Shown here one piece after another: positions 8,101 to 49,744 of a stretch of DNA of 64,000 nt. The position numbers and the translations under genes were made by a program. Position 1 is the first letter of the stretch. Every line of letters starts with the position of its first letter. The notes below the pieces were generated by a model. The model was not told the origin of the DNA, did not search any database, and saw only the letters and a program-made list of their open reading frames with translations. The stretch is from Isurus oxyrinchus. Lineage: Eukaryota. The stretch spans positions 2,728,001 through 2,792,000 of the forward strand of contig JANJGN010000052.1 of NCBI GenBank assembly GCA_026770705.1, read 5' to 3'.

Positions 8101-8140
8101 ATGATCGGGAAATCTTACTTCCTCCTGTCACTTCTCCAAG
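8101..8140 (+). CDS. Gene A leader exon (MIGKSYFLLSLLQ)
   Basis: Acceptor ends 8067, ATG at 8101, phase-1 donor AAG|GTAATA. Same peptide in gene B. Confidence 0.85.
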
Positions 8141-11100
8141 GTAATATCATCGTCAGCTTGGACAGATTTATGGTTAATAGTGTTTGTATAAGACCATTCT
8201 TATTGAGCTCTGATAGGGAACCGATTCAGCAGTGAGCCAGTGTACAAACTCAGACCAAGTCCCATTCACCCATCACCCCTGTGCTCACTGATATACACTG
8301 ACTCCCTGTCTGACAGCAGAATTGGAGGAGAGCAGAGATCACAGAGGGTTGTAGGTTTGGAGGGGGTTACAGAGACAGGGAGTGGAGCGGAGTGATGGAG
8401 GGATTGGAAATCAAGTGTGAAAATAATCACATCGAGGTGTTGCTGGACGGGGAGCCAGTGTAGGTCAGCGAGTGACTTGTGGGGTCGGGGTGGAGGTTTG
8501 GGGAGGTGAAAGTTTGAGTAGAAAATCAAACACAAAATTCAGGGGATGAAGTCTAACTTGATGCTGAGAGTCTGACAGCAATGGCCTGAAATTAGTGTCT
8601 TTTGCTGATTTTAGTCAGAATTTCCCATGAAGACAACACAGCAGCTCCTAGAATAGACAGGCTGTTCAGTGTCACACTTCCTGTCCATTCTCACCTTGCT
8701 AGATACTTCAATAAGGGAGCAAGATAACTGAAAGAGAGAAGGAAGGTAAAGCTGTCCGTGTGTAAAGGTGTCAATATTCAGTTTGTATATTTGTCTTTCT
8801 CTCGACACATGCAGAGCTCAGGCTAGAGGCACTTTGTTAGTGTGTTTCACAGTGTCTGCTGGAGTAGGGTCAGTGCTGAGCTTGGGGACAAGTCAGTCTA
8901 CAATGCTGCATCGGAATCAACAATACAACAATATGGGGTTTGGATCAGAAATAATCCCTTAGACAATGAGGATCCAAAGAGATTCCTTAGACAATGAAGT
9001 GACAATGAAGATTCAGTTGACATTGAGGATCCAGAATTAAATATAGATATTTCTCTCCCCAGTTGGACTGTCACAAGAGTGGAAAGGTGACACTCCACGA
9101 GAGGTGACAGTGCAGGAAGGTTTGTGTGTACAGATTCCATGTCATTACAGTTATCCATCACATTTGGAAAACCAACCGCGAGGTGGAGTCTGGTTTAATA
9201 ATGAGAAACAGATTCCCTGGGCTCCCATTGCCTTTCACTCCAAGGATCACAGTCACGAGTTACCACGGTTCCACAATCGGACCCGGCTGTCTGGAGACCT
9301 GAAAGATGGCGACTGTTCCCTGATTATAAACAACATCAGACGGGAAGATGCAGGACCTTATTTTTTCAAGATAGAATTTGACAATGGTCCGAGCCATAAC
9401 TATTACCCTGTAACCCAGCTTCACGTTTCTGGTAAGTGCTGTGTTATAATTACTCAACAATTCACATTCAACACTCAATGGGAAATAACACAATCTGTGA
9501 TGTTTACATATTAACACAAAACACAGCTTATTATAACACACTGTCTGATTCTCAATAACCTAGTGATAGCTTCCAGTTCAGTCCTAAAGCAACCTCTAAT
9601 ACTCACTTTAATATCAATGATTAAATAGATTGAGTGTGTCCATCAGTGTTATCAGGTTATCCAATCTTATCAAGCTGTCTAATCCTGTTTTAAATTCCCA
9701 CAAATTGACAACAGAATGAGTTGCATTCCTATAGCGCCTTTCACCACCTCAGGACGATCCTAAATCAATTCACAGTCAATGAAGTGATTCTTGAAGCACA
9801 CATTCTCCCCACTCTCTGGGTAAAGAAGTTTCTCCTGAATTCCCCATTGGATTTATTAGTGAGGATCTTATATTGTCAGCCTCTGGTTTTGTTCATTGTG
9901 AGGAGTGGAAACATTCTCTCCATGTCTACTCGATCAAAACCTTTCACTACTTCAAAGGTCAAATGAGGTCACCCTTCAACCTTCTCTGTTCAAGAGAACA
10001 GAGACCCAGCCTGTACACCCTCTCCTGATAGGTAAAGCCTCACATTGCTGAGATCATCCTTGTGAAGCTTTTTACCACCCTCTCCAGTGTCTCTATATCC
10101 TTTTCCAAATGCTGAGTCTGTTCTCCCCGAGCTGTGAGCTGTTCCTCCACCCTCACCCAATCTGGTCAAATCAAGGGTCACTGAGTGAGAGTGTATTAAT
10201 CTGAGTGACAGAGATTCAACAAGTGTAAAAATAGACAATTCTAAAATGATCATTGTAACCTCTCAGTTCTGATATCATCCTTGTAAAAGTGCTTTCTCTT
10301 GTGGGACTGTGGTTTCTATTTGAACTGATGCTTCGCGTTATATTTCTCTAAAAGGATCCATTCTCTGTCTGTTAGATTTCACAGATAAACCCACGATATT
10401 CCCTGCTGAAATTATTGCAGGAAAGCATGTGGATGTAAGCTGCACCTTCAACACAACGTGCAATGGAACAGCAGCACCTGTCTTAACCTGGGACACTCCC
10501 ACTGACGTACCTGGATCAGTCTCAAACACTGTAACTCAGCATGGTGTCACTCTGACCCATACTTCTGTTCTGACCCTGATCCCATCACTCAAACACCACG
10601 GACACACTCTCAGCTGCAGAGTGAGATATCCATCTGTTTCATCGGAGCGGACCCTCGTACTGACTGTGCTATGTAAGTACAAACACCCTTCTTTCTACAT
10701 TAGCTGGAATAGTATCAAATGTGCACAGCAAGCTCCCACATACTGCACTTTGTTTACCAACAAACCATTGGTGTTTAACTGGTAAAAAGTGAGCCCTGAC
10801 AGGCAGTACATCCTTACTACTGACTCTCCGACAGTGCATCATGGACTCATAGACTCATAGACACATAGACAGAAGGAGGCCATTTAGCCCATCATGTCCA
10901 TGCTGGTCAGCAACTCCCTCCCCAAGTGCATCACCTCACATATTTCCAGGTTGAATTCCATTTGCGTCTTGATCATTCCTCCTTTATATAAGTCCAATTC
11001 ATTTATATACACCACAAACAGCAAGTGCCCCAGCACTGAGCCCTGTGGAACCCCACTGGAAACAGACATCCAGTCACAGAAACATCCCTCCACCATCACC

Positions 11101-14100
11101 CTCTGCTTCCTGCCTCAGCCAATATTGGATCCAACGTGCCACTTTGCCTTGGATCCCATGGGCTCTTACTTTCTTGGCCTCTCTGCCAAGAGGCACCTTA
11201 TCAAAAGCCTTCCTCAGCCCATGTCGACCACAACAAAGGCATTACTCTCATCAACACTCCTGGTTACCTCCTCAAAAGATTTGATCAGGTTTGTCAAACA
11301 TGACCTTCCCTTAACAAATCCAACTGAATATCCCAGATTAATCCTTGTCTCTCCCAGTGCAGATTCATTCTGTCCTTCAGAATTCTTACTAGTAACTTCC
11401 CCACCACCGAGGTTAGACTGACTGGCCTGTAATTTCCTGATCTATCCCTTCCTCCCTTTTTTAATAATGGGACAACATTAGCCATCCTCCAGTCCTCTGG
11501 CACCTCACCTGTGGCCAGAGAGGATTTGAAAATTACTGCCAGGGCCCCTGATATCTCTTCCCTTTCCTCCCTCAACAGCTTTGGATTCATCTCATCTGGG
11601 CTTGTGGATTTATCCACTTTTCAGGCCACTAAACCCACTAGTACCTCCTCTCTCTGTGTTAATTTCATCTCATATTTCACAGTCCTCCACCCTGATGTTA
11701 TACCTGCATCATCCTTTTCCATTGTGAAGACAGATGCAAAGTATTCATTGAGGACTGTACCCACGTCTTCCAGGTCCACACACACATCACCTCTATGGCC
11801 CCTAATCGGCCCCACTCTTTCCCGAGTTATTCTGCTGCTTTTTACATATTTAAAAAACCCCTCTGGGTTTTGCTTTATTCTACCCACCAGTGCTTTCTCA
11901 TGCACTCTCTTATCTTTCCTCATGTCCTTTTTCAGTTCCCCTCTGCACTATTTGTACTCCTCTAGGGACTCTGCTGTATTGAGCCCTCAGTATCTGCCAT
12001 AAGCTTCTTTTTTTTCTCAGTCCTAACCTTTATGTTCCTTGTCTTCCAGGGTTCTCCAGACTTGGTCTCCCTCTTTGTCTTTACAGGAAGATATCTGCTC
12101 TGTACTCTCGCTATTCCCTCCTTGAATGCCTCCCACTGCTCTGACACAGTTTTATCTGCAAAGAGCTTCTCCCAGTCCACTTGGGCCAAATCATATCTCA
12201 TCTTAGTAAAATTAGCCTTTCCCCAGTTTAGAATTTTTATTCCCAGCACAAACTTATCCTTCTCCATAACTGTCCTAAATCCAATTGAGTTACAGTCACC
12301 ATCTCCCCTACTGATACGCTTTCCAACTTCCCCGGCGCTTTTCCATATATTAGGTCCAGAACAAGGTCCCCTCCCTTGTTGAGCTTTCTATGCACAGACT
12401 AAAAATCTTCTCCTGGATGCAACTTCAGAATTTTTCTCCCTCCCTACCTTGCTCACTAAAGCTGTCCCAGTTAATATTTGGGTAGTTAAAATCCCTGAGT
12501 ATTACTGCTTTATTATTCTTACACATCTCTGAAATGTGATCACATGTTGGATTGTCCATCTCTCCCTGACTGTTTGTTGGTTTTATATCTTGAGTCTATG
12601 AGTTCACTGGTTGAGTAAACTCGAATTGCATTCCTTCATATACACTTGTTAGTTGATAAAAACAAAAAAACTGCGGATGCTGGAAATCCAAAACAAAAAC
12701 AGAATTACCTGGAAAAACTCAGCAGGTCTGGCAGCATCGGCGGAGAAGAAAAGTGTTGACGGTTCGAGTCCTCATGACCTCAGTTCTGTCGAAGGGTCAT
12801 GAGGACTCGAAACATCAACTCTTTTCTTCTCCCCCGATGCTGCCAGACCTGTTGAGTTATTCTTAGCTGATGCTCGCTATCAATAACCAAGAGAGACCGA
12901 CATTAGAACAAGCTGATTATTTATTGTAACAGAGGGCAGAGCACTAAATCCTTGCCTGCTCCCACAACCACCTCCAGCTCTGGACTTACAGTTAACCAGT
13001 GGCCCACACTGTCCAGTTATTGGTCAGTACTGTCACATGGTTTATCCACTTGTATTCTCTTAAAAGTACCTGGCACTCCACATTATCACAGGAGGCCTAT
13101 AGTACACACATAACAGCATGTTTGCCTCCTCAGCACTGACCCTTCTACAGTGCAGCACTCCCTCATTACTGTCTCTCTAATAGTGTAATGATCCCTCAGT
13201 AGTGCTCCTCCAACATTGCACTGGTCAATCAGAACTGATGCTCTGACTGTGCAGTTTTATCTCAGCAGTAACCCTCCTACAGTGCAGTGCTCCCACAGTA
13301 CTGTCCCTCCTACAGTGCAGCACTGACTGCACCCTCTGAGGACTGACCCTCTGACAGTGCAGCACTCCCTCAGTACTGAACCTCTGGCAGTGCAGCACTC
13401 CCTCAGTACTGACTCTCTGACAGTGCAGCACTCCCTCAGTACTGACCCTCTGACAGTGCAGCACGCCCTCAATACTGAACTGAAGTGTCTGCCAGGATTA
13501 CGGACTATGTGGTGAAAGAACCTACATTGACATCACACCTTTCACATTCTCAGTGTCTTTCAAAGTGCTTCACAGTCAGTGTAAGTTAACTGATCTGTAT
13601 TTGTTTTTAGACGCACCACGGAATCTCTCAATTACTTCTCTTGATATGATTAACGCTTCATCGATCAATATAATTGAGGGGAATTCTGCAGTGATAATCT
13701 GCTCTGTCGAGAGCTTCCCAGCTTCTAACCTGACGTGGCGACATCTTAATGTCCCAATGAACAGAACAAGTTCCAACAATGAGCTGTGGTTGGTGATTCC
13801 TCACGTTACATCCAGGGACACTGGAGACTATCAGTGTGTGGCAGAGAATGAACATGGAGCAGTGGAGGGGTTCATAACCATCACTGTGGAACGTGAGTTA
13901 CACAGACTTCAACATCTCTCTCAGATTCGAACACTACACAAACACCATCGAACATACACACCTAAATAGACACGTGCAGACACACATATATGACCACACA
14001 CAAAGACACACTCACACACAAACACTAACACTCACTCCCTCATGGGTTACCTGACCTCCCTCACTACCGCACTGGAGAGTTAGCCTGAATTCTGGGATTT

Positions 14101-17100
14101 GTGTTCCCATTCATATTTATGGAAGAATATGGAAATTACTATTACAGACACTCAGATGCTTAGAGGCTCTCACAGATACTCTCTGCGTCTCCAACTCTCT
14201 CTCTCCCTTTAAGAAGCTTCCTGAAACCTAACCCTTTGACGAATCACCAACCCAACTCCTCCTTATCTGATTCTGTGTGATTTTCTTTGTGTATCTGAGA
14301 GTAAGAGAGAGTTGGAGAGGTTTAGGAAGAGAATTCCTGCTGGTGAAAAGCTTACATAATGTTCTCACTATTTCCGTGCACATAATTCCCAGTATGTCCA
14401 AAGCCCCTGTTTATAATGATGACTGCCTATGTAAACGTCACGCTGTAGTTACAGCCTCTCACCAGTGGTGGCATTGTAGCCCTTAATCCTTGTGTTTCCC
14501 AGCTTTCCCAGCAACTCTACTTCCCAGTTTGCTACACAAGCTGTGAGTTCTTCGGAATTCAATTGTTTCTCAAACGGTGGATTTGATGTCATTTTATTGA
14601 AAACTTCCTCAGTGCCTCCCTGAAGGGTTTACACTCTCCGGGAAGCAGGAATAGGCTGGATGTTGGGGAGTTCATCTTTTCCCAGAGAGTAGTGATCCTC
14701 GGGAATGTGCTGTCAGTGGGTGTGGTCGTTGCTGTTTCTCTGTCACCTTCAAGAGGGATCTGGAGTGGTTACTGACTGGGGGAGAGATCATGGAAGCGGA
14801 GAATGATACAGCACAGGAGGAGGCCATTCAGCCCATTGTGCCTGTGCCAGGTCTTTCAATGTTCTATCCAATCAGATCCACTAACCACCACTCCACTTTG
14901 CCCCCATCTTCCTCCTTCAAGTGTTTATCCAATTTCCCTTTTGAAAGTTCTTATTGGATCTGCTTCCACCTCCCTTTCAGGCAGCACCTTCCAGATCACA
15001 ACAACTCGCTCTGTCAAAACAAATTCCCCATCCAGTTCGTCAATCTGTGTCCCTCTGGTTACCGACCCTCATGCCCCTTAAATACATCGATACTGTTCAC
15101 CTCAACCACTCCCTGTGGGAGCGAGTTCCACATTCTCCCCTCTCTCTGGGTAAAGATTGGAACTGTTTAGTAAGCGGGGGGTGTAAGTCCGTGGGGGAGT
15201 CCATCTCAATCCTGCCCGATTGAGCCAGTGAGCCAGTGTACAAACTCACACCAAGTCCCATTCACCCATCACCCCTGTGCTTACTGATACACACTGACCT
15301 CCTGTCTGACAGCAGAATTGGAGGAGAGCAGAGATCTCAGAGGTTTTTAGGGTTGGAGGAGGTTACAGTGATAGAGAGTGTAGAGGGGGGATGGTGGGGT
15401 AAGAAATCAATGATGAGAATTTGAAATTTGAGTCATTGCTGGACTGAGAGTTAGTGTAGGTCAGCCAGTGACAGGGCAGCGATCGGCTGAATAGAGAATC
15501 AGGGATAAAAACTGGGGGATGAAGTCTATCCTGATGTGAGGTCTCCGATAGCAATGACCTGAAATTTGTGTCCTTTGCTGCCTTTATTCAAAATTGCCCA
15601 TGAAGACAACACAGCAGCTCCTAGAATAGACAGGCTGTTCAGTGTCACACTTCCTGTCCATTCTCACCTTGCTAGATACTTCAATAAGGGAGCAAGATAA
15701 CTGACAGAGACAAGGGAGGCAAAGCTGTCTGTGTGTAGAACTGTCAAATATTCTGAGTTATCATGAGTGTCTCTGACCTGCTGCAGAGTTCAAATTTCAC
15801 AGAATCTGAGCACTTTGCAGCTCAGAGAGAGACCATTGACTCACTGCCTGAAAGGCCGGTGGAAGCAGATTCAACAGGAACTTTCAGAAGGGGAACTGGA
15901 TAAATACTTGAAGGTGACATTTTGCAGGGCTGTGGAGGAGAGAGCAGAGGTGAGAGTGGGACTAATTGGACAGATCTTTCAAAAGCCCAGCACAGGCTCG
16001 ATGGGCCAAATGGCTTCCTTTTGTTCCCGATCATTCTACAATCTGATAAATTAAGACCCACATCAATAACTCTTAAGGCTCCAGCTGCAGGGATGGATCT
16101 TTGAGAAGGACAGGGAACAAGAGGTTTCTGGTATCATTTTCAATTTTATTGACAATTACATAACAGTATAGATTTGTTGAATATTTGAGTGTCTAAAGAG
16201 TAGAGGTAATCTGCACTTACGCCCAGATCTTGTGTTGGTAACCTTGTCTGGAGGTGTCTTTAAATGCTCACAGTGATCTGTGGGATTGTCATTCTTGGAT
16301 GTTGTCCCTGGTTTCAATTGGCATTTTACCCTTGATGCAATTGGGGAGGCTTTAAACTAACATGGCAGGGGATGGGATCCAGAGAGGAGGTTCAGCAGAG
16401 GGAGATGCACAGCCAAAATTAGAAGAGAGAGCAAGTGAACCTGGAAGGCAGAGAAATTATTGGCCAGTTAAGGCACAAGATAGCGTGGCAAAGTTGGATT
16501 ATATTTACTTTAATGCAAGGAGTCTGACGAATAAAGCAGATGAGTTGAGGGCACAAATAACACATGGATGTATGATGTCATTGCTGTCACAGACATGGAT
16601 TAGAGAGGGGCAGGATTGGCCGCTCAATATTACAGGATACAGGGTCTTCTGGCAAGACAGGGAAGGAGGTAAAAGAGGAGGGGGTATTGCAAGATTGATC
16701 AAGGAATCAGTTATTGCAGTGAGGAGGGAAGACACCTTAGGGGGCTCCTCAAATGAAGCCATATGGGTAGAACCTAAAAACAAATAAGGAGCAATCAGCT
16801 TGCTGAGAGTGTTCTACAGGCCCAATGACACTCAGAGAAATAGAATTGCAGATACAAAGGCAAAATTCAGAGAAGTATAAAAATAATCGGGTTGTAATGG
16901 TGGGGCTTTTCACCTTCCCCAACAATAACTGGGTTAGTCATAGTGTGATAGTTTTAGAGGGGGCAGAATTGTTAAAATGCATCCAGGAGAGATTTTTAAG
17001 CCAGTACATAGAAAATCCTACAAGAGAGGGGTCGGTCCTGGAGTAAATTTTAAGGAATGTAACCAGGCAAGTTGTAGACGTATCAGTGGGGGAGCATTGT

Positions 17101-20100
17101 GCAGATAGTGATCATCATTCCATTAGATTCTAGGTTGTTATGGAAAAGAACAAGGATGGGCCAGAAATCTGAGTTCTCAATTGGTGGAAGGCTGATTTTA
17201 ATAAGATCAAATATGATTTGGCCAGAGTGGAACTGGGAGCAGCTACCTTTAGGGAAATCTGCGTCAGAGCAATGGGACTCATTCAGGAAGGAAGTGGGGA
17301 GAGTACAGGGCCAACATATTCCAGTAAAGGCAAATGGTGGGACCAACAAATCCAGGGAATCCTGGATGTCGAGAGATTTACAGGATTGGATAAAGAGAAA
17401 AAGGGAGGCTTATGGCAGATACCGAGGGCTCAAAACAGTGGAAGCCTTAGAAGAGTGCAGAATGTGTAGGGGGGACCTTAAAAAGAAAATTAGTAGAGCA
17501 AAAAGGGGGCATGAAGAAACATTAGCAGGAAAAATGAAGGAAAATCCAAAGTTATTTTACAAGTACATTAAGAGTAAGAGGATAACTAGGGAAAGATTAA
17601 GGCCCATTAAGGACCATATTGGTAGTTTGTGTGTGGAGCCGGAAGATGTAGGTAGGGTGCTAAATGAACACTTTGTGTCAGTGTTCACAAGTGAGAGGGG
17701 CAATGTGGGTTTGGAAATCAGGCAGAAGGACTGTGATATAGTTAAAGAAATTAGAATAGAAAGGAATGAGGTTCTAAGTGGTCTGGCAGTCTCAAACGTA
17801 GATATATCTGCAGGCCCGGATGAAATGTATCTCAGGCTGTTGAGTGAGGCAAGGGAGGAGATAGCAGGGGTGCTGGCAATAATTTTCAATACATCTCTGG
17901 CCAGAGGAGAGGTACCCGAGGACTGGAGGACAGCCAATGTGGTACCGTTATTCAAGAAGGGAGGAAGGGATAAACCAGGGAACAACAGGCCAGTCAGTCT
18001 AACCTCAGTGGTGGGGAAACTATTGGAAGCAATTCTGAGGGACAGAATTAATCTACACTTGGAGAGGCAGGGATTAATCAAGGACAAGCAGCATGGTTTT
18101 GTTAAAGGGAGGTCATGTCTGACCAGTTTGATTGAATTTTTTGAAGAGGTGACCAATTGTGTAGATGAGGGCAATGAATCTGACATCGTCAACTTGGACT
18201 TCAGCAAGGCTTTTGATAAGGTCCCGCATGGGAGACTGTAAACGAAAGTAAGAGCACATGGGATCCAAGGGAATTTGGCAAATTGGATCAAGAATTGGCT
18301 GAGTGCCAGGAAATAGAGGGTGATGGTCAAGGGGTGTTTTTGTGACTGGATGCCTGTGACCAGTGGGGTTCCACAGGGATCGGTGCTGGGTCCCTTGCTG
18401 TTTGTGGTATATATAAACGGTCTAAACTTGAATGTAGGAAGGTTGATCAGTGACTTTGCGGATGATATGGAAATTGATGGGGTGGTAAATAATGAGGAGG
18501 ATAGCCTTAGATTACAGGGGGATATAGACGGGCTGGTCAGATGGGCTGATCAGTGCCAAATGGAATTTAACCTGGATAAGTGTGAGGTGATGCACTTGGG
18601 CAGGATAAACAAGGCACAGGAATAGACAATGAATGGTAGGACCCTGGAAAGTAACAAGGATCAGAGTAACCTTGGTGTGCATGTCCACCGTTCCCTTAAA
18701 GTAGTGGGACAGGTGGATAAGGTGGTTAAGAAGGCATATGGAATACTTGCCTTTATTAGCCGAGAGATAGAATATAAGAGCAGGGAGGTTATGCTGGAAC
18801 TGTATAGAACACTGGTTAGGCCACAGCTAGAATATTGCGTGCAGTTCTGGAACCCGCATTATAGAAAGGATGTGATTGTCCAAGAGAGGGTGCAGAACCC
18901 ACTTGAAACAAATGCTATGTCTCCCTCCTCATCTGACCCCAGACGCTTGTTACACTGTGAGCCAACCAGTCTCACTGAACTGAGATATCCATATGAGGGT
19001 TTCCAATCTCCACTTTCCAAGAACACGCTTTGGAATCTTCTCCAACATGACACTTTCACTCAGACACCTTCCACAAGGGTCCATTTTCACTATTTCAAAC
19101 TCTCCTTCCCATGTTCCTGTCCCCTGGATCGCCACGTGCATTCAGCCTTCCTTCCACGCCCTGTCTCTCCAATGCTCAGCCGTGTCAATGGAACACCATG
19201 GCTTCACATGGCCGTAGTAATGAGTCACCAACCTGTGGTGTCTCCTAGGATCTTCTGGCTTCTCACAAGCCTATTTTGCTTTAGGCCTGTGTCCTGCTGC
19301 TTTCTCCCTTTATGTTTGGAGCCTTCTTCTGCTCCTCACTCTTAACTTCACTTAACAGGGCCTTTCCCAGATTTGACGAGAAGGTTTTCTTGGGCCCTTT
19401 CTCCTGTTCCACTCGATGGTTTTTGCTTCATCTTTACTTTGGGACTGACTATCTGTCCCGCTCCTTTGCTGCTTCTCCTGGCAACTCCTTTCAACAGAAC
19501 TGAAAGTACTTTTCTGTTTTTCTCGGTCTCTGTGGGTCCTTCCCTCTGCATCACTGTTACTAGGCAACAGAACAGTTTCGTCTACTTTCTGTTTGTTTTG
19601 ACTTCCAATCAAGAGTCATAAAACTCATTAGATATGTGGCTTCATTTGAAGTAAAACCAAAAGTCAAGTTCCCCCTTTTCTAAACACCCAAATACAGAAA
19701 TACAAACTCAACTTGAACTTAAAGATAGACCTTATGCCTAACACACACAAATACACAGAGAACTTCCTTAAGCCAACCCCAGTTCCTAAAAATCACATGA
19801 CACACTTCCCCTCGAGAGATGTCATGCTGCTGTCCCTGAAAGGCATATTACAACAGTGTTATCACTTGGCAGGTGATGTGTGCCAGGCAGACCAAGTCCA
19901 TGAGAGAAAGGTGGTCACATGATCGTAATGACTTTTGATGTTTTTATTTATTATGAGATGTGTGCACTGAATTCAGAAGCAATAAGTCCACAAAGATCTT
20001 CAGAGATTTAAAAAAATAAATTAAAATATTTATCATCAAAATAAAAGATTTCAAGCACATACATAAGACTACAATGACTGCTATAATAACTCCTAAAATT

Positions 20101-23100
20101 CCTAATTAACCTGACTCCCAGTTACACTCCCTTTAAGGCAACAGACCAAAAATAGATGTTAGATTTAAAACAAACTCAGCAAGTTAACACAATGCCCTGG
20201 ACAGTGGAATTCCAAATCGATTTTCCCCAACTTCAGTTCTGTTGGATAGCAGGCTTGTGCACAAACAGGGTCCTGAGGACCATGAGCCAATGTAGAATGA
20301 CCTTTCCAGTCCTGTGTCCAGGATTCTCCTCTATCCATTGTGAAACCTTGGGGAGTTCCATGTGTGTCCTGTAGATGGTCCACACTGCAGACACTGTGCC
20401 CCAGTGATGGAGGGGGTGGATATCGAGTCTAGTGGATCGACTAAACATCCAGAGTTAAATACTGATATTTCTCTCCCCAGTCGTATTGTCACAAGAGTGG
20501 AAAGGTGACACTCCACGAGGGGTGACAGCGCAGGAAGGTTTGTGTGTACAGATTCCGTGTCATTACAGTTATCTAGCAAGTGTGGTAGGGAGCGCATGTG
20601 TCGGAATCTGGTATGTGAAATGGTACACATGGAATACATGGTCTAGAGTGACCATAGCCTTTCACTCCAAGGATCACAGTCACGAGTTACCACGGTACCA
20701 CCATCGGACCCGGTTGTCTGGAGACCTGAATGATGGCGACTGTTCCCTGATTATAAACAACATCAGACGGGAAGATGCAGGATATTATTATTTCAGAATA
20801 GAATTTGACAATGGTCCGAGCCATAACTATTACCCTGTAACCCAGCTTCACGTTTCTGGTAAGTGCTGTGTTATAATTACTCAACAATTCACATCCAACA
20901 CTCAATGGGAAATAATAGTGTTTGATTTGCTTGTTTTTTGGCCATGTTAACCAGCGTCACTATTTTTAATGATTTGTCTATTTCTGCTCCCAGATCCATG
21001 AGCTTATTGTGTGTGATTGAATCCACATCATAGCTGTAACGTAAACCGAGCTGAGGGATGATGACACCTCCCCCCTGAGTGAAGTATCTCCTCCCCACTA
21101 TACCTTCCACCCCTCACACTGTCCGTGTAAAACCCCGTCCCATCTCCAGCCTCTCTTTCACCTCCAAAGTCCTAGAACGTGTTTCCATCTCCCGAATCCA
21201 TTCCCATCTTTCCCGGAACTCCATGTGTGAATCCCTCCAATCAGGTTCCCACCCCAGCCACTGTGCTGAAACAGCTCTTATCAAGGTCACAAATGGCATC
21301 CTGTGTGACTGTGACAAAGGTCAACTTTCCCTCCTCGTCCTTCTCGATCTGTCTGCAGCCTTTGACACGCTCGACCACACCATCCTCCTCCAACACCTCT
21401 CCACTGTCGTCCAGCTGGGTGGGACTGCTCTCCCCTGGCTCCATTCTTATCCATCACATCGTAGCCAGAGAATCACTTGCAATGGCTTTGCAGCATCATC
21501 TGAACAGTGTTAGTTTTCACCTGTCCACTGAGGATGCCCAGCTCTACCTCACCACCACCTCTCTCGACTCCTCCACTGCTGCTAACTTATCAGGCTGCTT
21601 ATCCGACATCCAGTACTGGATGGACAGAAATTCCCTCCAATTAAATATTGGAAAGACTGAAGCCATTGTCTTCATTCCCCGCTCCAAACTCTGTTCCCTC
21701 GCTACCAACTCCATTCCTCTCCCTGGCAGCTCTCTGAGATTGAAGCCAATCTGTTCACAGCTTTGTTGTCCCATTTGATCCTGAGATGAGCTTCCGGCCT
21801 CATATCTGCGCCCTCACTAACACCGTCTATTTCCACCTCCGTAACATCACACGACATCACCCTGTCTCAGCTCATCTGCTGCTGAAACCCTCATCCATGC
21901 CTTCATTACCTCCAGACTCGACTGTTCCAACACACGCTCTACACTCCATAAACTTGAGGCCATCCAAAACTGCTGACCACGTCCTTACTCACACCAAGTC
22001 CCATTCCCTCATCACCCGCTCTGCTCGATGACCGAGACTGGCTCCTGGTCAAGCAAAGTCTCAATGTCCAAATTTTCATCTTTGATTCCTCACTATCCCT
22101 GTAATCTCCTGTTCCACCTCCAGTATCTACAACCATCCCATTCTTTGTAACCTCTTCAAGCCTTTACCACTTCACTATATCTGTAAATTCATCCTGCCCA
22201 ACAAACCTACCAATCTCTGCAACCTCCTCCAGCCACTACAAACCTCCCTATTTCTGTAACTTCCTCCTGCCCCTAAAAGCTTCCCTATCTCTGTAGCCTG
22301 CTCCAGTCCTGACAACTTTCCCTGCCCCTGTAACCTGCCCCAGTCACTACAACCCTCCCTACCTCTGCAAACTCCTCCAGACCCTACACTCTCCCAATCT
22401 CTCTTAACTTTTTCAGCCCCTACAACCCTTCCTATCTCTGTAACCTCCTCCAGTCACTCCAATCCTCTGAGGTCTCTGCGCTCCTCCAATTCCAGCCTCT
22501 TGACCATCCCCCGATCCCATCACTCCAACATAGGCAGCTGTGCCTTCAGCCTTGAGTCTTATTTTTGAGGGAATGTACAACCTCCTTAGATTTCTGACCA
22601 AAATGTATTTTGATTATTTTTATTGAGCGAATGCCAAGCCCCGATACCGAGCGAGAGCCTCCTCATTTGCTGAGTTTAAGGTGATGGGTCAGCCCCTTAG
22701 TCTGTAGAGGGGATTCTCCTCGGTAATGTGCAGCCTTGTTTGTGTCTCTCCACAAGCGCATGAGGGGTTTGTACAGAGGCTGCAGCGCTGGAGGGGGTCT
22801 GCACAGGGGTCCTGGCCTGTCCTGAGCCGGTTTTAGCAAGGACCACTCTGGCCTTGGCAGCTGAAAGCCAGCCATTGGACAGACGGGGCCTGTCACAAGG
22901 AGCCTGTTAGTGACTCCCCACCGTGTCTCCTGTGCTCGGATCCAGACCATGTTGGCTGGTGGATCTGGCTCAGGAAGGGTCCTCCCCATGGGACCCCCAG
23001 ATGGAAGGTGGGTCGAGCGGGTCAGTCACTTGCATGTTTATTCTGCAGCTTTAATATTTTAAGATGGTAAGAATGTAGGAACATAAGAAATAGGAACAGG

Positions 23101-26093: not shown

Positions 26094-26129
<36 letters not shown>

Positions 26130-31931: not shown

Positions 31932-32013
31932 GAGAAAGACAGCGATGGAGGAGAGAGTTTCAGGGACCAGAGACATTGCATTGAACCCCAGTTCACTCTC
32001 TGTGAAACACCAG
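31932..32013 (+). CDS. Duplicated cytoplasmic exon 1' (RKTAMEERVSGTRDIALNPSSLSVKHQ)
   Basis: Intact splice sites, 82 nt, same phases as 29014-29095. Confidence 0.75.
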
Positions 32014-33393: not shown

Positions 33394-33642
33394 GGTAAAC
33401 AGAACGTGCTGATTACTGAGCCCCAGAACACAACCAGAGACACAACTAGTGAGGGGGAGACCCCAGCTCCCCGGGGTCTCTCTGAAGGTCCAGTGGGAGG
33501 TGATGCTGGACATGGAATCCTTGACAATCCCAACGACCTTCTCTACGCCAATCCCCAAGTCTTCAGGGTGCCCAGTGGTGATGGGTCTGTCCACAGGGAA
33601 GAGGAGACGGAATACGCACAGATCAGATTCAAGCGAAACTGA
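33394..33642 (+). CDS. Duplicated terminal exon, tail 2 (LLYANP...TEYAQI)
   Basis: Intact acceptor and ORF, AATAAA at 34242. Confidence 0.75.
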   Translation, partial: GKQNVLITEPQNTTRDTTSEGETPAPRGLSEGPVGGDAGHGILDNPNDLLYANPQVFRVPSGDGSVHREEETEYAQIRFKRN

Positions 33643-37689: not shown

Positions 37690-38285
37690 ACTATGACACA
37701 GCCAAGGGTAAAGGCTGAGTTGTTCAAATCCCAGAGGGAAAATTGAAACAACTGTCATAACCCAATTTTGCTGATTGTAATTTTGAGATGAAGACTTTGA
37801 ATTCAGCAGGAATAAGACGACCGAGGCTTTTGAGTTTTTTTATATAAAACTAAATAAACCATTTATTAATTTAACAACAAATTTAACACATACACATTGG
37901 CTACAAGTAACTACTATAATAAATTTTTAACAAATCCCCAATTAATCACCCCGACGTAAATCTCTACTAAGGCAACAATGAACCATTGACATAATATAGA
38001 CACCAGGCAAAGCACATTTGACAATACGAGTTCTGAATGAGGTTCCTTTGCTAGTTGGTTGGAGGCTACAGGCTGGTTAGGTCTGAAATGCTCCTGCCTC
38101 ACACACACAAGCTCCTTCCTTTATATAGCTAGCTTTCCCTTTGAATGTAAATTTTCCATTGTATCACTCGGACTTCTGAACTCCAGCTCTTCGAACAATA
38201 AAAGCCCCTTTCATTGCACCAATTTCATTAGTAAGTTCAAGAAAAAAACACATCCTACTTGTAATGTTCTTATATTCTTATACAG
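37690..38285 (-). mobile_element. LTR-like repeat fragment (related to 29230-29980, 32137-32880, 54760-55065)
   Basis: Shared TATGACACAGC...AAATCCCAGAGGGAAA..AACAACTGTCATAAC terminus. Confidence 0.55.
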
Positions 38286-38319
38286 ACACAAGGTTTACTG
38301 TCAGTGCACAGCAAAGTGC

Positions 38320-38479
38320 TGTTCTGTCACTTTGTTCCAACTTCCTCATTTTGTCTCACAGAGATACATCAGCTCTTTCTAATTAAATACACAGAGGGAG
38401 CAGCACAGGAAGAGGTCATTCAGCCCAAGCAGAGCGTGTGGGCAGTTCCTCCCCAGGCGAGCAGTCGGACAGGTCCTGG
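38320..38479 (+). promoter_or_regulatory. Gene B promoter/5' non-coding exon
   Basis: ACTTCCTC 38340-38347, TTAAATA 38383-38389, donor at 38480. Paralogous to 7500-7656. Confidence 0.65.
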
Positions 38480-38912
38480 GTAAGTAACGGAACGATTGGA
38501 ATTCACTTCCACCACCAACACCGTCCTTTGTTGATGTTGTGACTTTATAAAGACAGATTCCAATGATTGATGCCTTTGAAAGATTTCTACTGATTATTGA
38601 GATCTGGGTGTGAGGCTCAAGTCAGTTGTACAAAACATCTTTCTAGCTCAAGGGACATGAGCTTGGGGACATCCTGAGGTGGTGAAAGGTGCTATAGAAA
38701 TGCAAGTCCTTCATTGTTTTTCTTTCTGAAAGCCTTGTACCTCTCTGCAGAGCACCTATCATCCCACAAAGAATCAAATTAGTCTGTGAAGATATTGTCT
38801 AAAAGCAGTTCTGATCTCTCGAGAGCATTCGGACAAGAGGTGAAGTCTCATTAACTCCTTTCTCTTTCAGAACTTCAGAGTTATAAGCTGAGGAAATATC
38901 TGGGAGTGGACA

Positions 38913-38952
38913 ATGATCGGTAAATCATACTTCCTCCTGTCACTTCTCCAAG
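38913..38952 (+). CDS. Gene B leader exon (MIGKSYFLLSLLQ)
   Basis: Acceptor ends 38870, ATG at 38913, donor at 38953. Confidence 0.85.
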
Positions 38953-41900: not shown

Positions 41901-44900
41901 AGGGCTCCTAATCCATTGTCCTGTCTTGTAAATCAGCACTGAATGGATCTCAATTGGTGGGTCTTGTAGACACTGTGTTGGGTGGAAGACTGGCTTCACT
42001 AAGGGGAAGCGGTAGCAGAGAGGTATTGTCACTGGGCTAGTATTCCAGAGGCCCAGGGTGATGCTCTGGGGCCCTGGGTGTAAATCCCATCACAGCAGAT
42101 GAATGGGATTAAAAAGCCTGGTTCACTGATCACCTATAGGGAAGGAAATCTGCCACCCTTACCCAGTCTGGCCGACATGTCACTCCAAACCCACAGCAAT
42201 TTGGTTGAATCTTAAATACCTCTGATGGACATGGGATGGGTAATAAATGCTATGAATGAATAATTTGAAAAAACTAAACAGGGTCCTGAGGACCATGAGC
42301 CAATGTAGAATCAACTAGTCCACTCCTGTGTCCAGGATTCTCTTCCATCCATTGTGAAACCTTGGGGATTTCCTTGTGTGTCCTGTAGATGGTCCACACT
42401 GCAGCCACTGTGCCCTAGTGATGGAGGGAGTAGATATCAAGTCTAGTGGATCGAAAAAAGATCCAGAGTTAAATATTGATATTTCTCTCCCCAGTTGGAC
42501 TGTCACAAGAGTGGAAAGGTGACACTCCACGAGAGGTGACAGCTCATGAAAGTTCGTGTGTACAGATTCCATGTCATTACAGTTATCCATCACATTTGGA
42601 AAACCAACCGCGAGGTGGAGTCTGGTTTAATAATGAGAAACAGATTCCCTGGGCTCCCATTGCCTTTCACTCCAAGGATCACAGTCACGAGTTACCACGG
42701 TTCCGCCATCGGACCCGGCTGTCTGGAGACCTGAAAGATGGCGACTGTTCCCTGATTATAAACAACATCAGACGGGAAGATGCAGGACCTTATTTTTTCA
42801 GAATAGAATTTGACAATGGTCCGAGCCATAACTATTACCCTGTAACCCAGCTTCACGTTTCTGGTAAGTGCTGTGTTATAATTACTCAACAATTCACATC
42901 CAACACTCAATGGGAAATAACACAAACTGTGACGTTTACCTATTAACACAAAACACAGCTTATTATAACACACCGTCTGATTCTCAATAACCTGGTGATC
43001 GCTTCCAGTTCAGTCCTAAAGCAACCTCTAATATTCTTTAATATCAATGATTAAATGTGTTGACTGTGTCCATCAATGTTATCAGGTTATACACTCCCAT
43101 CAATCTCTCTAATCCTGTTTAAAAGTCTGACAAATCGACAAAGTAAAGACTTGCATTCCTATAGCGTCTTTCACCACCTCACCACGTACCAAATCACTTC
43201 ACAGACAATGAAGAAATTCTTGAAGTATAGTCACTGTCTAACGTGGCAGTGAGTTTGTTCACAGGAAGCTCCCACAGAGAGCAATGGGATCAGTGACCCA
43301 GATCTCTGAGAGAATGATGAGCCAGGGTTCCATGAGCTGTGGGCTGCTCCATCACCCACACCCCAGTGTTGGCAATTCAAGGGTCTGGGAGTGAAAGTGT
43401 ATTCAGCTCAGTGACACGTTCCCCACCAAGTTTGAAAATAGGAAAGTTGCTGCTGATTGTTGTGACCTCTCAGTTCCCATCTCATTCTTGGAAACCTGCT
43501 TTCAAAATACAAAAGTAAGTCTCACATTTCCATAGCGCCTTTTACCACCTCAGGACGATCCTAAACTGATTCACAGCCAATGAAGTGATTCTTGAAGTAC
43601 ACGTTCTCCCCAGTCTCTGGGTAAAGAAGTTTCTCCTGAATTCCCCATTGGATTTATTAGTGAGGATGTTATATTGTCAGCCTCTAGTTTTGTTCATTGT
43701 GAGGAGTGGAAACACTCTCTCCATGTCTACTCGATCAAAACCTTTCATTACTTCAAAGATCAAATGAGGTCACCCCTCAACCTTCTCTGTTCAAGAGAAC
43801 AGAGACCCATCCTCTACATCCTCTCCTGATAGGTAAAGCCTCACGTTGCTGTGATCATCCTTGTGAAGCTTTTTACCACGCTCTCCAGTGTCTCCATATC
43901 CTTTTTACAATATGGGGACCGGAACTGCACACGTAACTCCAGCTGCAGTCAGACCAAGGTACAGAACAAGTTTCACATCACTTCTCTACTTTTCAATTCA
44001 ATCCCTGGAGAAATAATCTCGAGTGTTTAGTTTGTATGTTTAATCCCCTTGTTAACCTGTGTCCCCACGTTTACTGATTCCTGTATTTCTGCCCCAGATC
44101 ACGTTGTTCCTCTACCCCAATTAGATTCTTATTTTCGAGGTAAGATTCAAGCTCCTCATTTTCCTGAACAAAATGTAATGCCTCAAATTTATTAACGTAG
44201 AAACTCATTTGTCAATGACCTGCCCATTCTGCAAGTTTATTAATATCTTTCTATAATGTAAAAGCAAAATTCTCCAGATGCTGGAAATCTGTAACTAAAA
44301 CAAAAATTGCTGGAAAAACTCAGCAGGTCTGACAGTATCTGTGGAGAGGAAGACAGAGTTAATGTTTCGAGTCCGTATGATTCTTCATCAGAATGTATAT
44401 CTTCCTGTAATTTGTTCCAGTCCTCCTCAGTATTGACCATCCCCCCAATTCAGCCTCATCTGTAAATATCGGGTTCAGTGGATCCACAAACCTTCCAGAG
44501 ATAAATATTGAGATTTCTCTCCCCAGCTGAACCCTCACAAGAGTGGAAAGGTGACACTCCACGAGAGGTGACAGCGCAGGAAGGTTCGTGTGTACAGATT
44601 CCATGTCATTACAGTTATCCATCGTGTCTGGAAAACCAACCGCGAGGTGGAGTCTGGTTTAATAATGAGAAACAGATTCCCTGGTCTCCCATTGCCTTTC
44701 ACTCCAAGGATCACAGTCACGAGTTACCACGGTTCCACAATCGGACCCGGCTGTCTGGAGACCTGAAAGATGGCGACTGTTCCCTGATTATAAACAACAT
44801 CAGACGGGAAGATGAAGGACCTTATTTTTTCAGAATAGAATTTGGCAATGGTCCGGGCCATAACTATTACCCTGTAACCCAGCTTCACGTTTCTGGTAAG

Positions 44901-47900
44901 TGCTGTGTTATAAATACTCAACAATTCACATCCAACACTCAATGGGAAATAACACAAACTGTGACGTTTACATATTAACACAAAACACAGCTTATTATAA
45001 CACACTGTCTGATTCTCAATAACCTGGTGATAGCTTCCAGTTCTGTCCTAAAGCAACCTTTAATACTCACTTTAATATCAATGATTAAATGTATTCCACT
45101 CCCATCGATCTCTCTAATCGTGTCTAACAGTCTATCAGGATCGTTAAAACATCTCAGTTCTGATATCATCCTCATAAAAATGCTTTCTCTTGTGGGACTG
45201 TGATTTCTATTTGAACTGATGCTTCACGTTATATTTCTCTAAAAGGATCCATTCTCTGTCTGTTAGATTTCACAGATAAACCCACGATATTCCCTGCTGA
45301 AATTATTGCAGGAAAGCGTGTGGATGTAAGCTGCACCTTCAACACAACGTGCAATGGAACAGCAGCACCTGTCTTAACCTGGGACACTCCCACTGACGTA
45401 CCTGGATCAGTCTCAAACACTGTAACTCAGCATGGTGTCTCTCTGACCTATACTTCTGTTCTGACCCTGATCCCATCACTCAAACACCATGGATACACTC
45501 TCAGCTGCAGAGTGAGATATCCATCTGTTTCATCGGAGCGGACCCTCGTACTAACTGTGCAAGGTAAGTACATACACCTTTCATTCTATATTAGCTAGAG
45601 AGCTCCACATAGTACACTGCAAGATGCCACAAATTCATTGTGTTTAGCTACAAATCAATCGTCTTTAACTGATACAAATTCACCTCTGACACTGCAGCAG
45701 TCTCTCAGTACTGAACCTCTGACAGTGCAACACTCCCTCAGTACTGATCCACTGACAGTGCAGCACTCCCTCAGTACTGACCCTTCGACAGTGCGGCACT
45801 CCCTCAGTACTGACCCTTCGACAGTGCAGCACTCCCTCAGTACTGAACCTGTGACAGTGCAACACTCCCTCAGTACTGATCCACTGACAGTGCAGCACTA
45901 CGTCAGTACTGACCCTTCGACAGTGCAGCACTCCCTCAGTACTAACCCTCCGACAATGCAGCACTCCCTCAGTACTGAACTGAGGTGTCTGCCTGGATTA
46001 TGGGCTTTGTGGTGAAAGAACCTATATTGATATCACACCTTTCACATTCTCAGTGTCTCTCAAAGTGCTTCACAGTCAGTGTAAGTTAATTGATGTTTAT
46101 TTGTTTTTAGATGCACCACAGAATCTCTCATTTACTTCTCTTGAAATGATTAACGCTTCATCGATCAATATAATTGAGGGGAATTCTACAGTGATAATCT
46201 GCTCTGTCGAGAGCTTCCCAGCTTCTAACCTGACGTGGCAACATCTTAATGTCCCAATGAACAGAACAAGTTCCAACAATGAGCTGTGGTTGGTGATTCC
46301 TCACGTTACATCCAGGGACACTGGAGACTATCAGTGTGTGGCAGAGAATGAACATGGAGCAGTGGAGGGATTCATAACCATCACTGTGGAATGTGAGTGT
46401 GGAGATACATTTGTTTGTTTGTTGTCTCCGTGGTCTCCGTGGAGCCATTGGGATCGTGTTGTTTTTAATCCAGTTTTCTTCAATCCTCGCTCAGTCCACG
46501 TTATCCACACACCCAATTTTTCCTCTCCCTTTCTGTTTTTGCTCTCAGTTTCTCCTTCAATGGTTGTGAGGACAAGGCTGTCAGGTCTTCGTTTCCAATC
46601 TCCATACTTGACGACCTTTCTCTCTCTAACTGTCCTGAACAACCCTTTTAAATGCTGAACTTCTCATTCTTTAATTGATAAATATATATAAATGTTACAT
46701 GGATTACTTTGAAATGCAACACTTGTATTCATAAATTGCTTAGAAATTACTAAACATTCAACAGCCAATGAAGCATTATCGAAGTGAGCACACTTTTGTA
46801 ATGAAGGAAACACAGGTACTGATTTGTGCACAGCAAGATCCCGCAAATCACCGTGTGATAATGACCTGATAGTCGATTATTTCAGTGAGGTTGGTTGTTA
46901 CATGTGTAGAGACTACATACCCTTTAGGGAGGGAAGCATGTCTCGATGTGGATGTGACTCCAGTCTCAGACACCAACATGGTTAACTCTTACCTGCCCTC
47001 TGAACTGGTCTCCCAGTTTGGGACAAACCAGTGGTTCAGGAGGAAGACTCCCCACCACCTTCTCAAGGGGAAACTAGGGATGGACAATAAATGTCAGCAT
47101 TGCCCGAGAATGAGTATTTAAACACTGAGTGAGTGTATCGCTTCTCGAGATACATCGGAGCATCATTGTAAACCTGTAGTGCAGTAATTAATGGCTGTTT
47201 TTACAGGTAGAGACTCCAGTAAATGGACAGTAGGATTGTTCACGGCTGGGATCATGTTGAGTGTTTTCCTGGCTGGAATCTTCATCTTCATCTGTGTGAG
47301 AAAGTAAGTCTGAAGATTTAACTTGATTTTAATATAAACATTTGCTTCAATGTTCTTTCCTGAAGTCGGTGATTGTTTCCCTTGGGATCAGCACCAGGTC
47401 CCTCTCTGTAAGTGATCCCTGTGTCCACTCTGATCCGGAGAGAACCTTTCATTGTCCTGTATCCAGGTAAACAATCACGAGACCCAGAGATTCCTCACTC
47501 TGCACGATTACTCCGGGATAAATATTTGCTTCAATGTTCTTTCCTTAAGTCGGTGATTGTTTCCCTTGGGATCAGCACCAGGTCCCTCTCCGTAACTGGT
47601 CCCTGTGTCCACTCTGATCCGGAGAGAACCTTTCATTGTCCTGTATCCAGTAAACAATCACGAGACCCAGAGATTCCTCACTCTGCACGATTACTCCTGG
47701 ATAAATATTTGCTTCAATGTTCTTTCCTGAAGTCGGTGATTGTTTCCCTTGTGTTAAGCGCTAGATGCCTCTCTGTAACTGGTCTCTTTTGTCCCTTACG
47801 ATCCAGACAGTGTTTTTCATTGCCCGTTATCCAGATGAATAATAATCAGTTGCTGTGATCTGGAAGGTGCTGCCTGAAAGGGCGCTGGAAGCAGATTTAA

Positions 47901-49744
47901 TAGGATCTTTCAAAAGGGGAATTGGATAAATACTTGAAGGTGGAACATTTGAAGGGCTATGGGGGGAAGAGCAGGGGTGGAGGGGGGGGTCAAAGATATG
48001 GCGTGTCATTATAATGATATTATACCTTAGGCTTATTTATTGTACAAGAAACAAAGCACCAATCGCTCACAGGGATTGGGTGAGAATGTTAATGATTTGT
48101 TTATCAAGACTCGGCACGAGAACAGTTATACATATGGAGAAAGATTGAAGGCATCAGAGCTGTGAGTGTGTGTTCTGCTCAAAGCAAAAGTCAAACTAAG
48201 ATTGGATCACATGACACACTTCCATTATAGTGATGTCACGCTGATACCCCTTATTGGAACTAGAGACAGTCCAGTCGTTGGTGTAAGGTTACACTGGGCT
48301 CTGTGTCTGTGCTGCACTGACTCTCTGCTATATGATAACCACAGTGTGATATTGTGTTATTGCAGGAGAAAGACAGCGATAGAGGAGAGAGTTTCAGGGA
48401 CCAGTGACATTGTATTGACCCCCAGTCCACTCTCTGTGAAGCATCAGGTACAGGAGCTGTTTACACTCACTCCAAAGCTTCTATCTCAGTGTGTAGACAA
48501 CACATGTCCCAGATTCCCAGCCAGGTTACCCACAGATATCTACCTGTGGAGTCAGATATGGCTCAGTAGGTAGCATTGTCTCTCGCTCCCTCCCCCTCTT
48601 CCCTCCATCACTTGCTCTTTGACCAGAAACCTGAACGCAATAATGACAAGGCACCTGATGTCAGTAGTGAGGGAGTGCTGCACTGTCCTAGGGTCTGTGC
48701 TGAGGGAGTGCTGGAGTGTCAGAAGGTCAGTACTGAGGGAGTGTTGCACTGTCAGAAGGTCTGTACTGAGGGAGAGCTAGACTGTCAGAGGGTCAGTACT
48801 GAGGGAGTGCTGCGCTGTCATAGGGTCAGTACTGAGGGAGTGCTAGACTGTTGGACGGTCAGTACTGAGGGAGTGCTGCACTGTCGGAGGGTCAGTACTG
48901 AGGGAGTGCTGCACTGTCGGATGGTCAGTACTGAGGACAGTACTGAGTGAGTGCTGCACTGTCAAAGAGTCCATTTTCAAGGGGCGCTGCCCTCTTGAAG
49001 GGGCAGTTCCGAGGGAGTGCTGCACTGTCAGGAGTCAGCACTGAGAGAACATTGCAGTGTTCGAGGTGCCTCTTTCAGAATAGTTGTATAATGCTGACCA
49101 TGTTTACCATCTTATCTGGTCCCATGGCCACATTTCCAACACTGTAGCAGTGTCGCCCTTCAATAAAATTCCTTCATTGGCGTGAGGTTCTTTGTGTGTC
49201 TGTGTTTGTGAATAATGGGGCACAAATCTCATGATTGGGATGGTAACATAGGACTTCAAGACTCAGGTCTGCGATAGCGAGAGAGATTAAATGATAAGTA
49301 GAGAGAGAAAACAAGAGAGAGAGAGAGAAAGAGAGACAGAGAAAGAGATTGAAAAAAAGGAGACAGAGAAAGAGAGTGAAAAAGAGGGTTAAACCCATTG
49401 AGACATGACTGACAGTAACGAGGCTGCAGAATAACTTAACCCTATCAGTGCCAGTAAATGATGTGAGGATGTCTTCTGTTTCTATTTCTCTGTAGGGTAA
49501 ACAGAACATGCTGATTACTGAGCCCCGGAACACAACCAGAGACACAACTAGTGAGGGGGAGACCCCAGCTCCCCGGGGTCTCTCTGAAGGTCCAGTGGGA
49601 GGCGATGTTGGACATGGGAACTCCGACAAACCCGACGAGCTTTTCTACGCCAACATCAACTTTTCAAAGCTGCCCAGCGGTGACAGGACTGTGCACAGGA
49701 GCGAGGACACGGAATATGCACAGATCAGGTTCCAGAAAAACTGA
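38913..49744 (+). CDS. Siglec-like inhibitory receptor gene B, V-V-C2-C2-TM-ITIM-ITSM, 594 aa (38913-38952, 42495-42863, 44527-44895, 45267-45563, 46111-46392, 47207-47303, 48366-48447, 49496-49744)
   Basis: Eight coding exons with canonical splice sites sum to 1785 nt with an open frame. Both V domains keep YFFR. Confidence 0.85.
42005..42262 (+). mobile_element. tRNA-derived SINE (related piece at 40350-40510)
   Basis: A/B-box-like head. The 3' tail GGGATGGG.AATAAATGCT..ATGAATGAA is shared with the LINE 3' ends. Confidence 0.6.
42495..42863 (+). CDS. V-set exon V4 (gene B domain 1)
   Basis: 369 nt, begins with leader remnant VGLSQEW, YFFR. Confidence 0.92.
44527..44895 (+). CDS. V-set exon V5 (gene B domain 2)
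   Basis: 369 nt, begins AEPSQEW, YPSCLENQ, YFFR. Confidence 0.92.
45267..45563 (+). CDS. C2-set exon of gene B
   Basis: 297 nt, near-identical to 10376-10672. Confidence 0.92.
46111..46392 (+). CDS. Membrane-proximal Ig exon of gene B
   Basis: 282 nt, near-identical to 13611-13892. Confidence 0.92.
47207..47303 (+). CDS. Gene B transmembrane exon
   Basis: Identical by eye to 27944-28040. Confidence 0.9.
47335..47835 (+). repeat. ~182-bp intronic tandem triplication
   Basis: Units start near 47338, 47520 and 47702 (ATTTGCTTCAATGTTCTTTCC). Single copy in gene A at 28075-28255. Confidence 0.85.
48366..48447 (+). CDS. Gene B cytoplasmic exon 1
   Basis: 82 nt, RKTAIEERVSGTSDIVLTPSPLSVKHQ. Confidence 0.85.
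49496..49744 (+). CDS. Gene B terminal exon with ITIM LFYANI and ITSM TEYAQI
   Basis: Acceptor ttctctgtag. Motif order matches the CD33-related Siglec tail arrangement. Confidence 0.9.
   Translation, partial: GKQNMLITEPRNTTRDTTSEGETPAPRGLSEGPVGGDVGHGNSDKPDELFYANINFSKLPSGDRTVHRSEDTEYAQIRFQKN

Follow-up and report, generated by a model that had tools for sequence, protein, structure and literature searches.

A leaderless V-V unit downstream of a candidate truncated paralog in a Siglec-like gene cluster of the shark Isurus oxyrinchus

Can a shark Siglec carry V domains next to the membrane, behind its C2 domains? The question is raised by a stretch of Isurus oxyrinchus DNA (64,000 nucleotides; assembly GCA_026770705.1, contig JANJGN010000052.1, positions 2,728,001 to 2,792,000 of the forward strand; hereafter the window) that holds a cluster of Siglec-like immunoglobulin (Ig) exons. 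Two V exons, V2 and V3, lie there between the C2b exon of a first gene, A, and the first transmembrane (TM) exon, and the original prediction took all of these exons for one fused gene. The locus appears to comprise three tandem gene units, A, M and B, in the same + orientation (Table 1). We favour, at about even confidence, a real juxtaposition of two truncated paralogs, A and M, with little or no chimeric product. The anatomy of the locus, its homologies and the compatibility of its exon phases are direct observations.

Exon borders were set by eye from the sequence, with six-frame open reading frames (ORFs) and Pfam used for the Ig exons, and completeness was checked by a mismatch-tolerant scan and by tblastn with the proteins of five relatives. 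The readable sequence holds five intact V exons, two leaders, two C2a, two C2b and two TM exons, all on the + strand. Scan and tblastn thereby returned the same numbers of V, leader and TM exons as had been predicted. By Pfam and ORFs these include five V-set exons (also Ig_CD22), two C2-set_2 exons and two Ig_3/I-set exons. Neither method found a further leader, TM or hidden Ig exon in 13.9-20.4 kb or 24.6-27.9 kb. Each V exon is open, with the acceptor TTTCTCTCCCCAG/ and the donor G/GTAAGT. Ig exon lengths (369, 378, 369, 369, 369, 297 and 282 nt) are all divisible by three and entry is in phase 1 after a 40-nt leader, so every Ig exon is phase 1-1; lengths and borders thus uphold the prediction on this point. 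The TM exon is entered at phase 1 and left at phase 2, and the following cytoplasmic exon restores the frame. Eight runs of N interrupt the window, four of them within 25038-26287; positions 1 to 25037 are unbroken.

Pfam assigns all five V exons to V-set, at E 1e-10 to 1e-12, and to Ig_CD22; among solved structures they are closest to Siglec-5, CD33, Siglec-8 and Siglec-7, with MAG next. The essential strand-F Arg (YFFR.E; YFFRIE) is present in V2, V3, V4 and V5 and is Lys in V1; in the alignment of V5 it falls on the Arg position of the solved Siglec-5 and CD33. At sequence level, the Siglec cysteines EG[LS]CVQIPC (strand B) and GDCSLII (strand E) stand at the Siglec-5/CD33 positions. C2-set_2 and Ig_3 matches in A and B place C2 domains 3' of the V exons. 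The TM segments carry no charged residue, and the tails combine an immunoreceptor tyrosine-based inhibitory motif (ITIM) with a distal motif (LFYANI/TEYAQI in B, LLYANP/TEYAQI in M), LLYANP of the M tail being non-canonical at +3. Judged by the ranking of best matches, the family would be of the CD33-like inhibitory Siglec type. It can be set beside the teleost literature, in which fish genomes are stated to lack CD33-related Siglecs (PMC7226832), and beside the whale shark genome paper, in which Siglecs appear only in a list of jawed-vertebrate Ig families (PMC8455134). The shark family is labelled automatically in databases, and our literature search found no paper on multi-V shark Siglecs.

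Unit A appears to consist of leader, V1, C2a and C2b, without a TM exon of its own. Its leader is 100% identical to leaders of Siglec models from great white and from basking shark. In a self-comparison of the window, homology between A and B ends 6 bp past the C2b donor, and 13893-15215 has no homology to the C2b-TM intron of gene B; no TM or tail exon was found in this interval by mismatch-tolerant scan, tblastn or self-comparison. We considered the 1.3 kb after C2b as a remnant of A's own TM-side intron and rejected it, as it holds dispersed repeat fragments only. V1 is nearest to V4 (9 differences). The first piece of the V1-C2a intron of A (9726-10104) corresponds to 43528-43905 of the V4-V5 intron of B, and the next piece to sequence ahead of B's C2a, 3' of V5. 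A would be a B-type gene that lost its second V by an intron-to-intron deletion and now ends after C2b.

Unit M looks like a V-V-type gene without leader and without the C2a exon. Positions 15216-33900 are colinear with gene B in the self-comparison. At their 5' end, 15216-16136 matches B intron 1 (39033-39898) at 82% and A intron 1 (8221-8820) at 79%, and the intron copy that had been noted at 15215-16140 is therefore real. Alignment of the three leader regions and a mismatch-tolerant scan found no leader-like sequence upstream of 15216, in agreement with the earlier claim that V2 and V3 stand between C2 and TM exons with no leader of their own. The 218 bp upstream of V2 (20263-20480) are 92% like the sequence upstream of V4. 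Downstream of V3, the first 200 bp track the sequence downstream of V5 (97.5%), and then the V4-V5 intron (~80%). The C2a exon is absent at the colinear place before the gap in the self-comparison, and 24893-25037 matches the intron just after gene B C2a (72%, E 1e-17, the sole match in the window). The TM regions of M and B are 97% identical. Neither tblastn nor colinearity with B revealed a C2 exon in the readable sequence of M, the N runs at 25038-26287 being unread.

These N runs may hold a C2b exon. One or two hidden C2 exons would make M V-V-C2-TM and set V3 apart from the membrane. This reading could hold together with any of the others, and we regard it as unlikely. The gap begins within the first unit of a 33-bp satellite, which by colinearity with B precedes C2b, the next homology is to the C2b-TM intron, and M-type relatives have C2a. 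Set against this, the remnant of the post-C2a intron stands to the left of the gap and is not preceded by a C2a exon, M-type relatives lack C2b, and two of the three islands in the gap are CA-rich simple sequence. Since the gap sits in an intron, the reading frame across it is not at stake. To its right lies a repeat that is also present upstream of V3, and homology to the C2b-TM intron of B is found from 27375 only; the right flank was tried as the start of that intron and rejected, local alignment scores being at the level of shuffled sequence.

To place the units among known genes, window exon peptides were mapped onto ~300 proteins, of which ~190 elasmobranch models matched at >=50% identity. 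The closest proteins are those of Carcharodon carcharias (great white) and Cetorhinus maximus (basking shark), with the leader at 100%, C2a at up to 98% and TM at 97%; none is identical. The ~190 models have one to four N-terminal V domains, then C2a, C2b and TM. A V after a C2 occurs in none of them, and such orders are confined to remote matches, at 25-40% identity, in other vertebrates. V-V tandems are family-wide, already annotated and not special to this locus, and a V-C2-C2-V-V Siglec architecture is without annotated precedent among the relatives examined.

M-type models of great white and basking shark are annotated leader-V-V-C2a-TM-tail, with one basking shark isoform V-V-TM; they have a leader wherever the N-terminus is complete, C2a in at least one isoform and no C2b. 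The exceptional isoform is Cetorhinus maximus Siglec-12 isoform X3 (XP_078389734, P0006), annotated leader-V-V-TM-tail, which answers the earlier statement that no example of a membrane-proximal V was known. Its sister, basking shark isoform X6 (P0204), is leader-V-V-C2a, and the first V of both carries a W/Y-rich patch, YWETWSTWS, like WYTWNTWS of V2. Carcharodon carcharias LOC121274079 (XP_041037157, P0209) starts within a V2-type domain (KWYTWNTWS), at an internal Met, and has the order V-V-C2a-TM-tail-tail; great white XP_041037160 (P0285) is leader-V2-like (84%)-V-C2a. These Cetorhinus and Carcharodon models resemble M in the W/Y-rich first-V patch of V2, the PSCLENQ motif in the second V as in V3, a TM 90-97% identical, the same tail types, the one V-V-TM isoform and the serial tails. 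Unlike M they possess a leader (P0006, P0204, P0285) and a C2a exon, and unlike A-M they have no C2 domains ahead of the V pair. Short proteins matching V2 were considered as spliced fragments and rejected, as they proved to be three annotated shark proteins and no junction fragment.

A tree of 46 lamniform V domains placed V2 in a clade of 100/98 support that contains only first Vs of V-V genes, whereas V1, V3, V4 and V5 group with C2a-adjacent Vs. The placement rests largely on the central patch (20573-20656), in which V2 chiefly differs from the other Vs and outside which it is close to them. Because of the relatives' models and this tree, M is probably a conserved V-V-type gene minus leader and C2a.

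No run recorded as RNA was found to contain the stretch. Contigs of four runs (X1, X4, X5 and X7), guessed to be RNA, were mapped on 20000-25030; they are ~2% off the window and so come from related organisms. One X7 contig, with 24 nt on its shorter side, contains a joint 20857>23960 with GT..AG ends. As the first bases of V3 differ from those of V5, this is a V>V3-type junction. X1 loose ends at 23959 read leader sequence (leader>V), and loose ends at 20858 (X1) and 24329 (X5) read the start of C2a (V>C2a); the X5 end at 24329 has 158 nt with 2 mismatches and then 100 nt. Among the joints and loose ends listed for these related sharks in the four runs, none reads C2b before 20481 or TM after 24329, and the junctions 13892>20481 and 24329>27944, which the original prediction sought, are not among them. 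Depth over the V2-specific patch was 2-4 times that of unique intron parts in X1, faint in X7 and zero in X4 and X5; contig depth cannot rank expression.

These data bear on the possibility that A and M are one working fusion gene, in which one promoter would drive the combinatorial isoforms V1-C2-C2-TM, V2-V3-TM and V1-C2-C2-V2-V3-TM as a splice-diversified glycan receptor with membrane-proximal Vs. The shared phase of the Ig exons, strong and nearly identical splice sites, intact V2 and V3, a sole leader upstream of V1 with none before V2, and the lack of any other TM exon are as expected of such a gene, and the V-V-TM annotation of P0006 means that skipping of C2a has been modelled in a relative. 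We nonetheless consider it improbable, given that C2b>V2 and V3>TM are not among the joints and loose ends, that 0 of the ~190 close relatives places V after C2, that a 3-kb sense long interspersed nuclear element (LINE) and several AATAAA signals stand between C2b of A and V2, that X1 depth over the V2-specific patch is only 2-4 times intron depth, and that the terminal branch leading to V2 in the tree is long. The proposed V-C2-C2-V-V product thus finds no counterpart in the listed junctions or in the models. What relatives' contigs and models do contain is leader>V, V>V and V>C2a, with V>TM in one isoform, and this falls short of 'five interchangeable V exons' and a 'splice-diversified system'. 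Of the view of gene A as a fusion, two gene types set end to end in compatible phases remain; a functional product does not follow from them. Quite improbable, in our estimate, is the proposal that A-M is real and transcribed from the A promoter, with a leaderless V-V-TM gene rescued by the upstream leader and some products of V-C2-C2-V-V form.

Alternatively, the assembly may have collapsed or mis-joined near-identical tandem copies, and in the animal A would then be followed by a TM exon and tail belonging to it, while M would have a leader and possibly C2a as well. The family comprises dozens of copies at 88-97% identity, spread in great white over many small unplaced contigs, and the N runs inside M are irregular. 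No M-type relative with a complete N-terminus lacks a leader, C2a is present in at least one isoform of each, and the related shark contig of X5 joins a V3-like exon to C2a. We judge an artefact to be rather unlikely. Positions 1 to 25037 are unbroken, with no N at the A-M junction, whose flanks are unique sequence with no shared repeat, and the 3-kb LINE is read through, which a collapsed short-read assembly would rarely span. The piece in place of C2a is ~80% like its paralog, and is therefore old and no recent mis-fill; P0209, a V2-type great white model, likewise begins without a leader.

In the favoured account, a juxtaposition of truncated paralogs, the window would cover one section of a tandem family of CD33-like inhibitory Siglecs, very large and fast-evolving, in a lamniform shark near to the great white. 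Deletion, or unequal crossing-over among the tandem paralogs, would have placed M directly behind A, through the birth-and-death dynamics usual for such clusters. From M, the leader, some 80 bp at the start of intron 1 and the C2a exon would be gone, with V2, V3, the TM exon and two tail cassettes retained. With no signal peptide of their own, V2 and V3 would reach a protein only via transcripts from A's promoter. We put the chance that V2 or V3 occurs in mature mRNA of Isurus oxyrinchus at about one in three, in which case leader-V2-V3-TM, the form known from the basking shark, would be just as probable as the long V-C2-C2-V-V product; failing that, A and M would be decaying fragments beside a working gene B.

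Several points weigh against this account. Nothing in V2 or V3 is disrupted and their splice sites are strong, as would be seen either in exons still in use or in exons whose decay is recent, and dN/dS, the ratio of nonsynonymous to synonymous change, was 0.3-1.0 among V exons from few changes and does not separate decay from use; we rejected it as a test of use, as uninformative. The N runs may hide an exon, and the A-M juxtaposition may be an assembly error among near-identical tandem copies. The contigs come from related sharks and not from the window's own species, and the A-M junction (13.9-15.2 kb) and the TM exon lie outside the mapped 20000-25030.

As it stands, the locus is a clear case of birth-and-death evolution in the shark Siglec family, with loss of a V exon, of a C2 exon and of a leader and duplication of a tail, all via intron breakpoints. 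If the chimera were expressed, phase 1-1 Ig exons would let tandem receptor genes swap whole lectin domains, and a V domain predicted to bind glycans would lie at the membrane, a position relevant to whether ligands are recognised in cis or in trans. In primate paired-receptor clusters, unequal crossing-over underlies the SIGLEC14/SIGLEC5 fusion allele and the KIR and LILR hybrids. A-M would share with these the intron recombination of near-identical tandem paralogs and in-frame Ig chimeras; they keep the canonical domain order, whereas the order of A-M would be V-C2-C2-V-V and its expression is putative. The tail of primate Siglec-12 (Siglec-XII in humans) is inhibitory. Siglec-12 belongs to the CD33-related Siglecs and has two V-set domains at its N-terminus (PMC6288428). 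In one copy the essential Arg is lost. The shark family shares with it the two N-terminal V-set domains and the loss of the essential Arg in a copy, as in V1, but its tandem is of independent origin and its arrays of one to four Vs are family-wide. The V2-V3 pair further differs from Siglec-12 in having no leader and no C2 domain in readable sequence.

The two tails of M had been proposed as alternatives. The internal AG/GT of cassette 1 lies directly after TEYAQI(R), and in P0209 and P0194 of the great white TEYAQIR is joined to the RKTA... exon of the following cassette, which puts the tails in series. The M tails may likewise be used in series, giving four tyrosine motifs.

Unit B appears, from its exons, to be a complete inhibitory receptor, leader-V4-V5-C2a-C2b-TM-tail. 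V4 combines an upstream intron of the first-V type (42276-42863 versus 20263-20858; 92% like that of V2) with an exon body of the C2a-adjacent type. The V exons look mosaic, which suggests gene conversion of the exon body or of a patch.

Table 1. Positions of the features of units A, M and B and of the 33-bp satellite arrays, in window coordinates
Feature	Positions	Strand	Remarks
Gene A leader exon	8101..8140	+	MIGKSYFLLSLLQ, ends phase 1
V1, Siglec V-set exon	9063..9431	+	essential Arg to Lys (YFFKIE)
Gene A C2a exon	10376..10672	+	297 nt, phase 1-1
Gene A C2b exon	13611..13892	+	282 nt, phase 1-1, donor AAC/GTGAGT
Spacer 3' of gene A last exon	13893..15215	.	dispersed repeat fragments only
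5'-truncated intron 1 copy (M)	15216..16136	+	leader exon and first ~80 bp of intron missing
LINE-type element, reverse-transcriptase ORFs	16362..19345	+	sense, inside M intron 1
V2	20481..20858	+	378 nt, W/Y-rich C-C' patch; lineage of first Vs of V-V genes
V3	23961..24329	+	second-V (C2a-adjacent) lineage; 96% like V5 including flanks
Remnant of post-C2a intron of genes A/B	24893..25037	+	ends in first 33-bp satellite unit
N runs	25038..26287	.	three short islands between, two CA-rich
M TM exon	27944..28040	+	uncharged TM; phase 1 in, phase 2 out
Cytoplasmic exon, tail cassette 1	29014..29095	+	
Terminal exon, cassette 1	30525..30773	+	LLYANP ... TEYAQI; internal AG/GT at 30757/30758
Cytoplasmic exon, tail cassette 2	31932..32013	+	
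Terminal exon, cassette 2	33394..33642	+	LLYANP ... TEYAQI; without internal donor
Gene B leader exon	38913..38952	+	
V4, gene B first V	42495..42863	+	
V5, gene B second V	44527..44895	+	
Gene B C2a exon	45267..45563	+	
Gene B C2b exon	46111..46392	+	
Gene B TM exon	47207..47303	+	
Gene B cytoplasmic exon	48366..48447	+	
Gene B terminal exon	49496..49744	+	ITIM LFYANI, then TEYAQI
33-bp satellite arrays	1-617, 6683-7289, 13128-13478, 30128-30381, 33016-33247		
33-bp satellite arrays, remainder	45682-45980, 48660-48936, 56244-56530, 58569-58670		

The 33-bp satellite forms nine arrays, in both orientations, throughout the cluster, with sites in C2a-C2b introns, upstream of gene A and in or near tail cassettes; it may have been a substrate for rearrangements of the locus. 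Besides the sense LINE-type element, an inverted one with reverse-transcriptase ORFs occupies 11002-12442 (-) in the C2a-C2b intron of gene A, and the two copies are ~75% alike. A short dispersed repeat of ~190 bp occurs at 14800-14984 (-), 15844-16037 (+), 39630-39799, 47848-47948 and 4621-4832; the A-M breakpoint is ~230 bp downstream of one copy, and another, inverted, is contained in the intron-1 copy.

Remnants of cytoplasmic exons of another tail type, that of great white P0016 ending ...PVYVNV, were seen at 7579-7656 (+), 38387-38479 (+), 788-708 (-) and 3166-3053 (-). Two of them stand ~450-520 bp upstream of the A and B leaders, in a duplicated block (7495-8379 and 38318-39192). The TM-cytoplasmic intron of gene B contains, at 47334-47784, a 184-bp unit repeated 2.5 times (94% matches) that is absent from M. 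Two further satellite blocks were noted, one at 928-1971 with a 43-bp unit repeated 24 times and the other at the window end (58736-64000), where GA/GT-rich repeats with a 72-bp unit extend over >5 kb.

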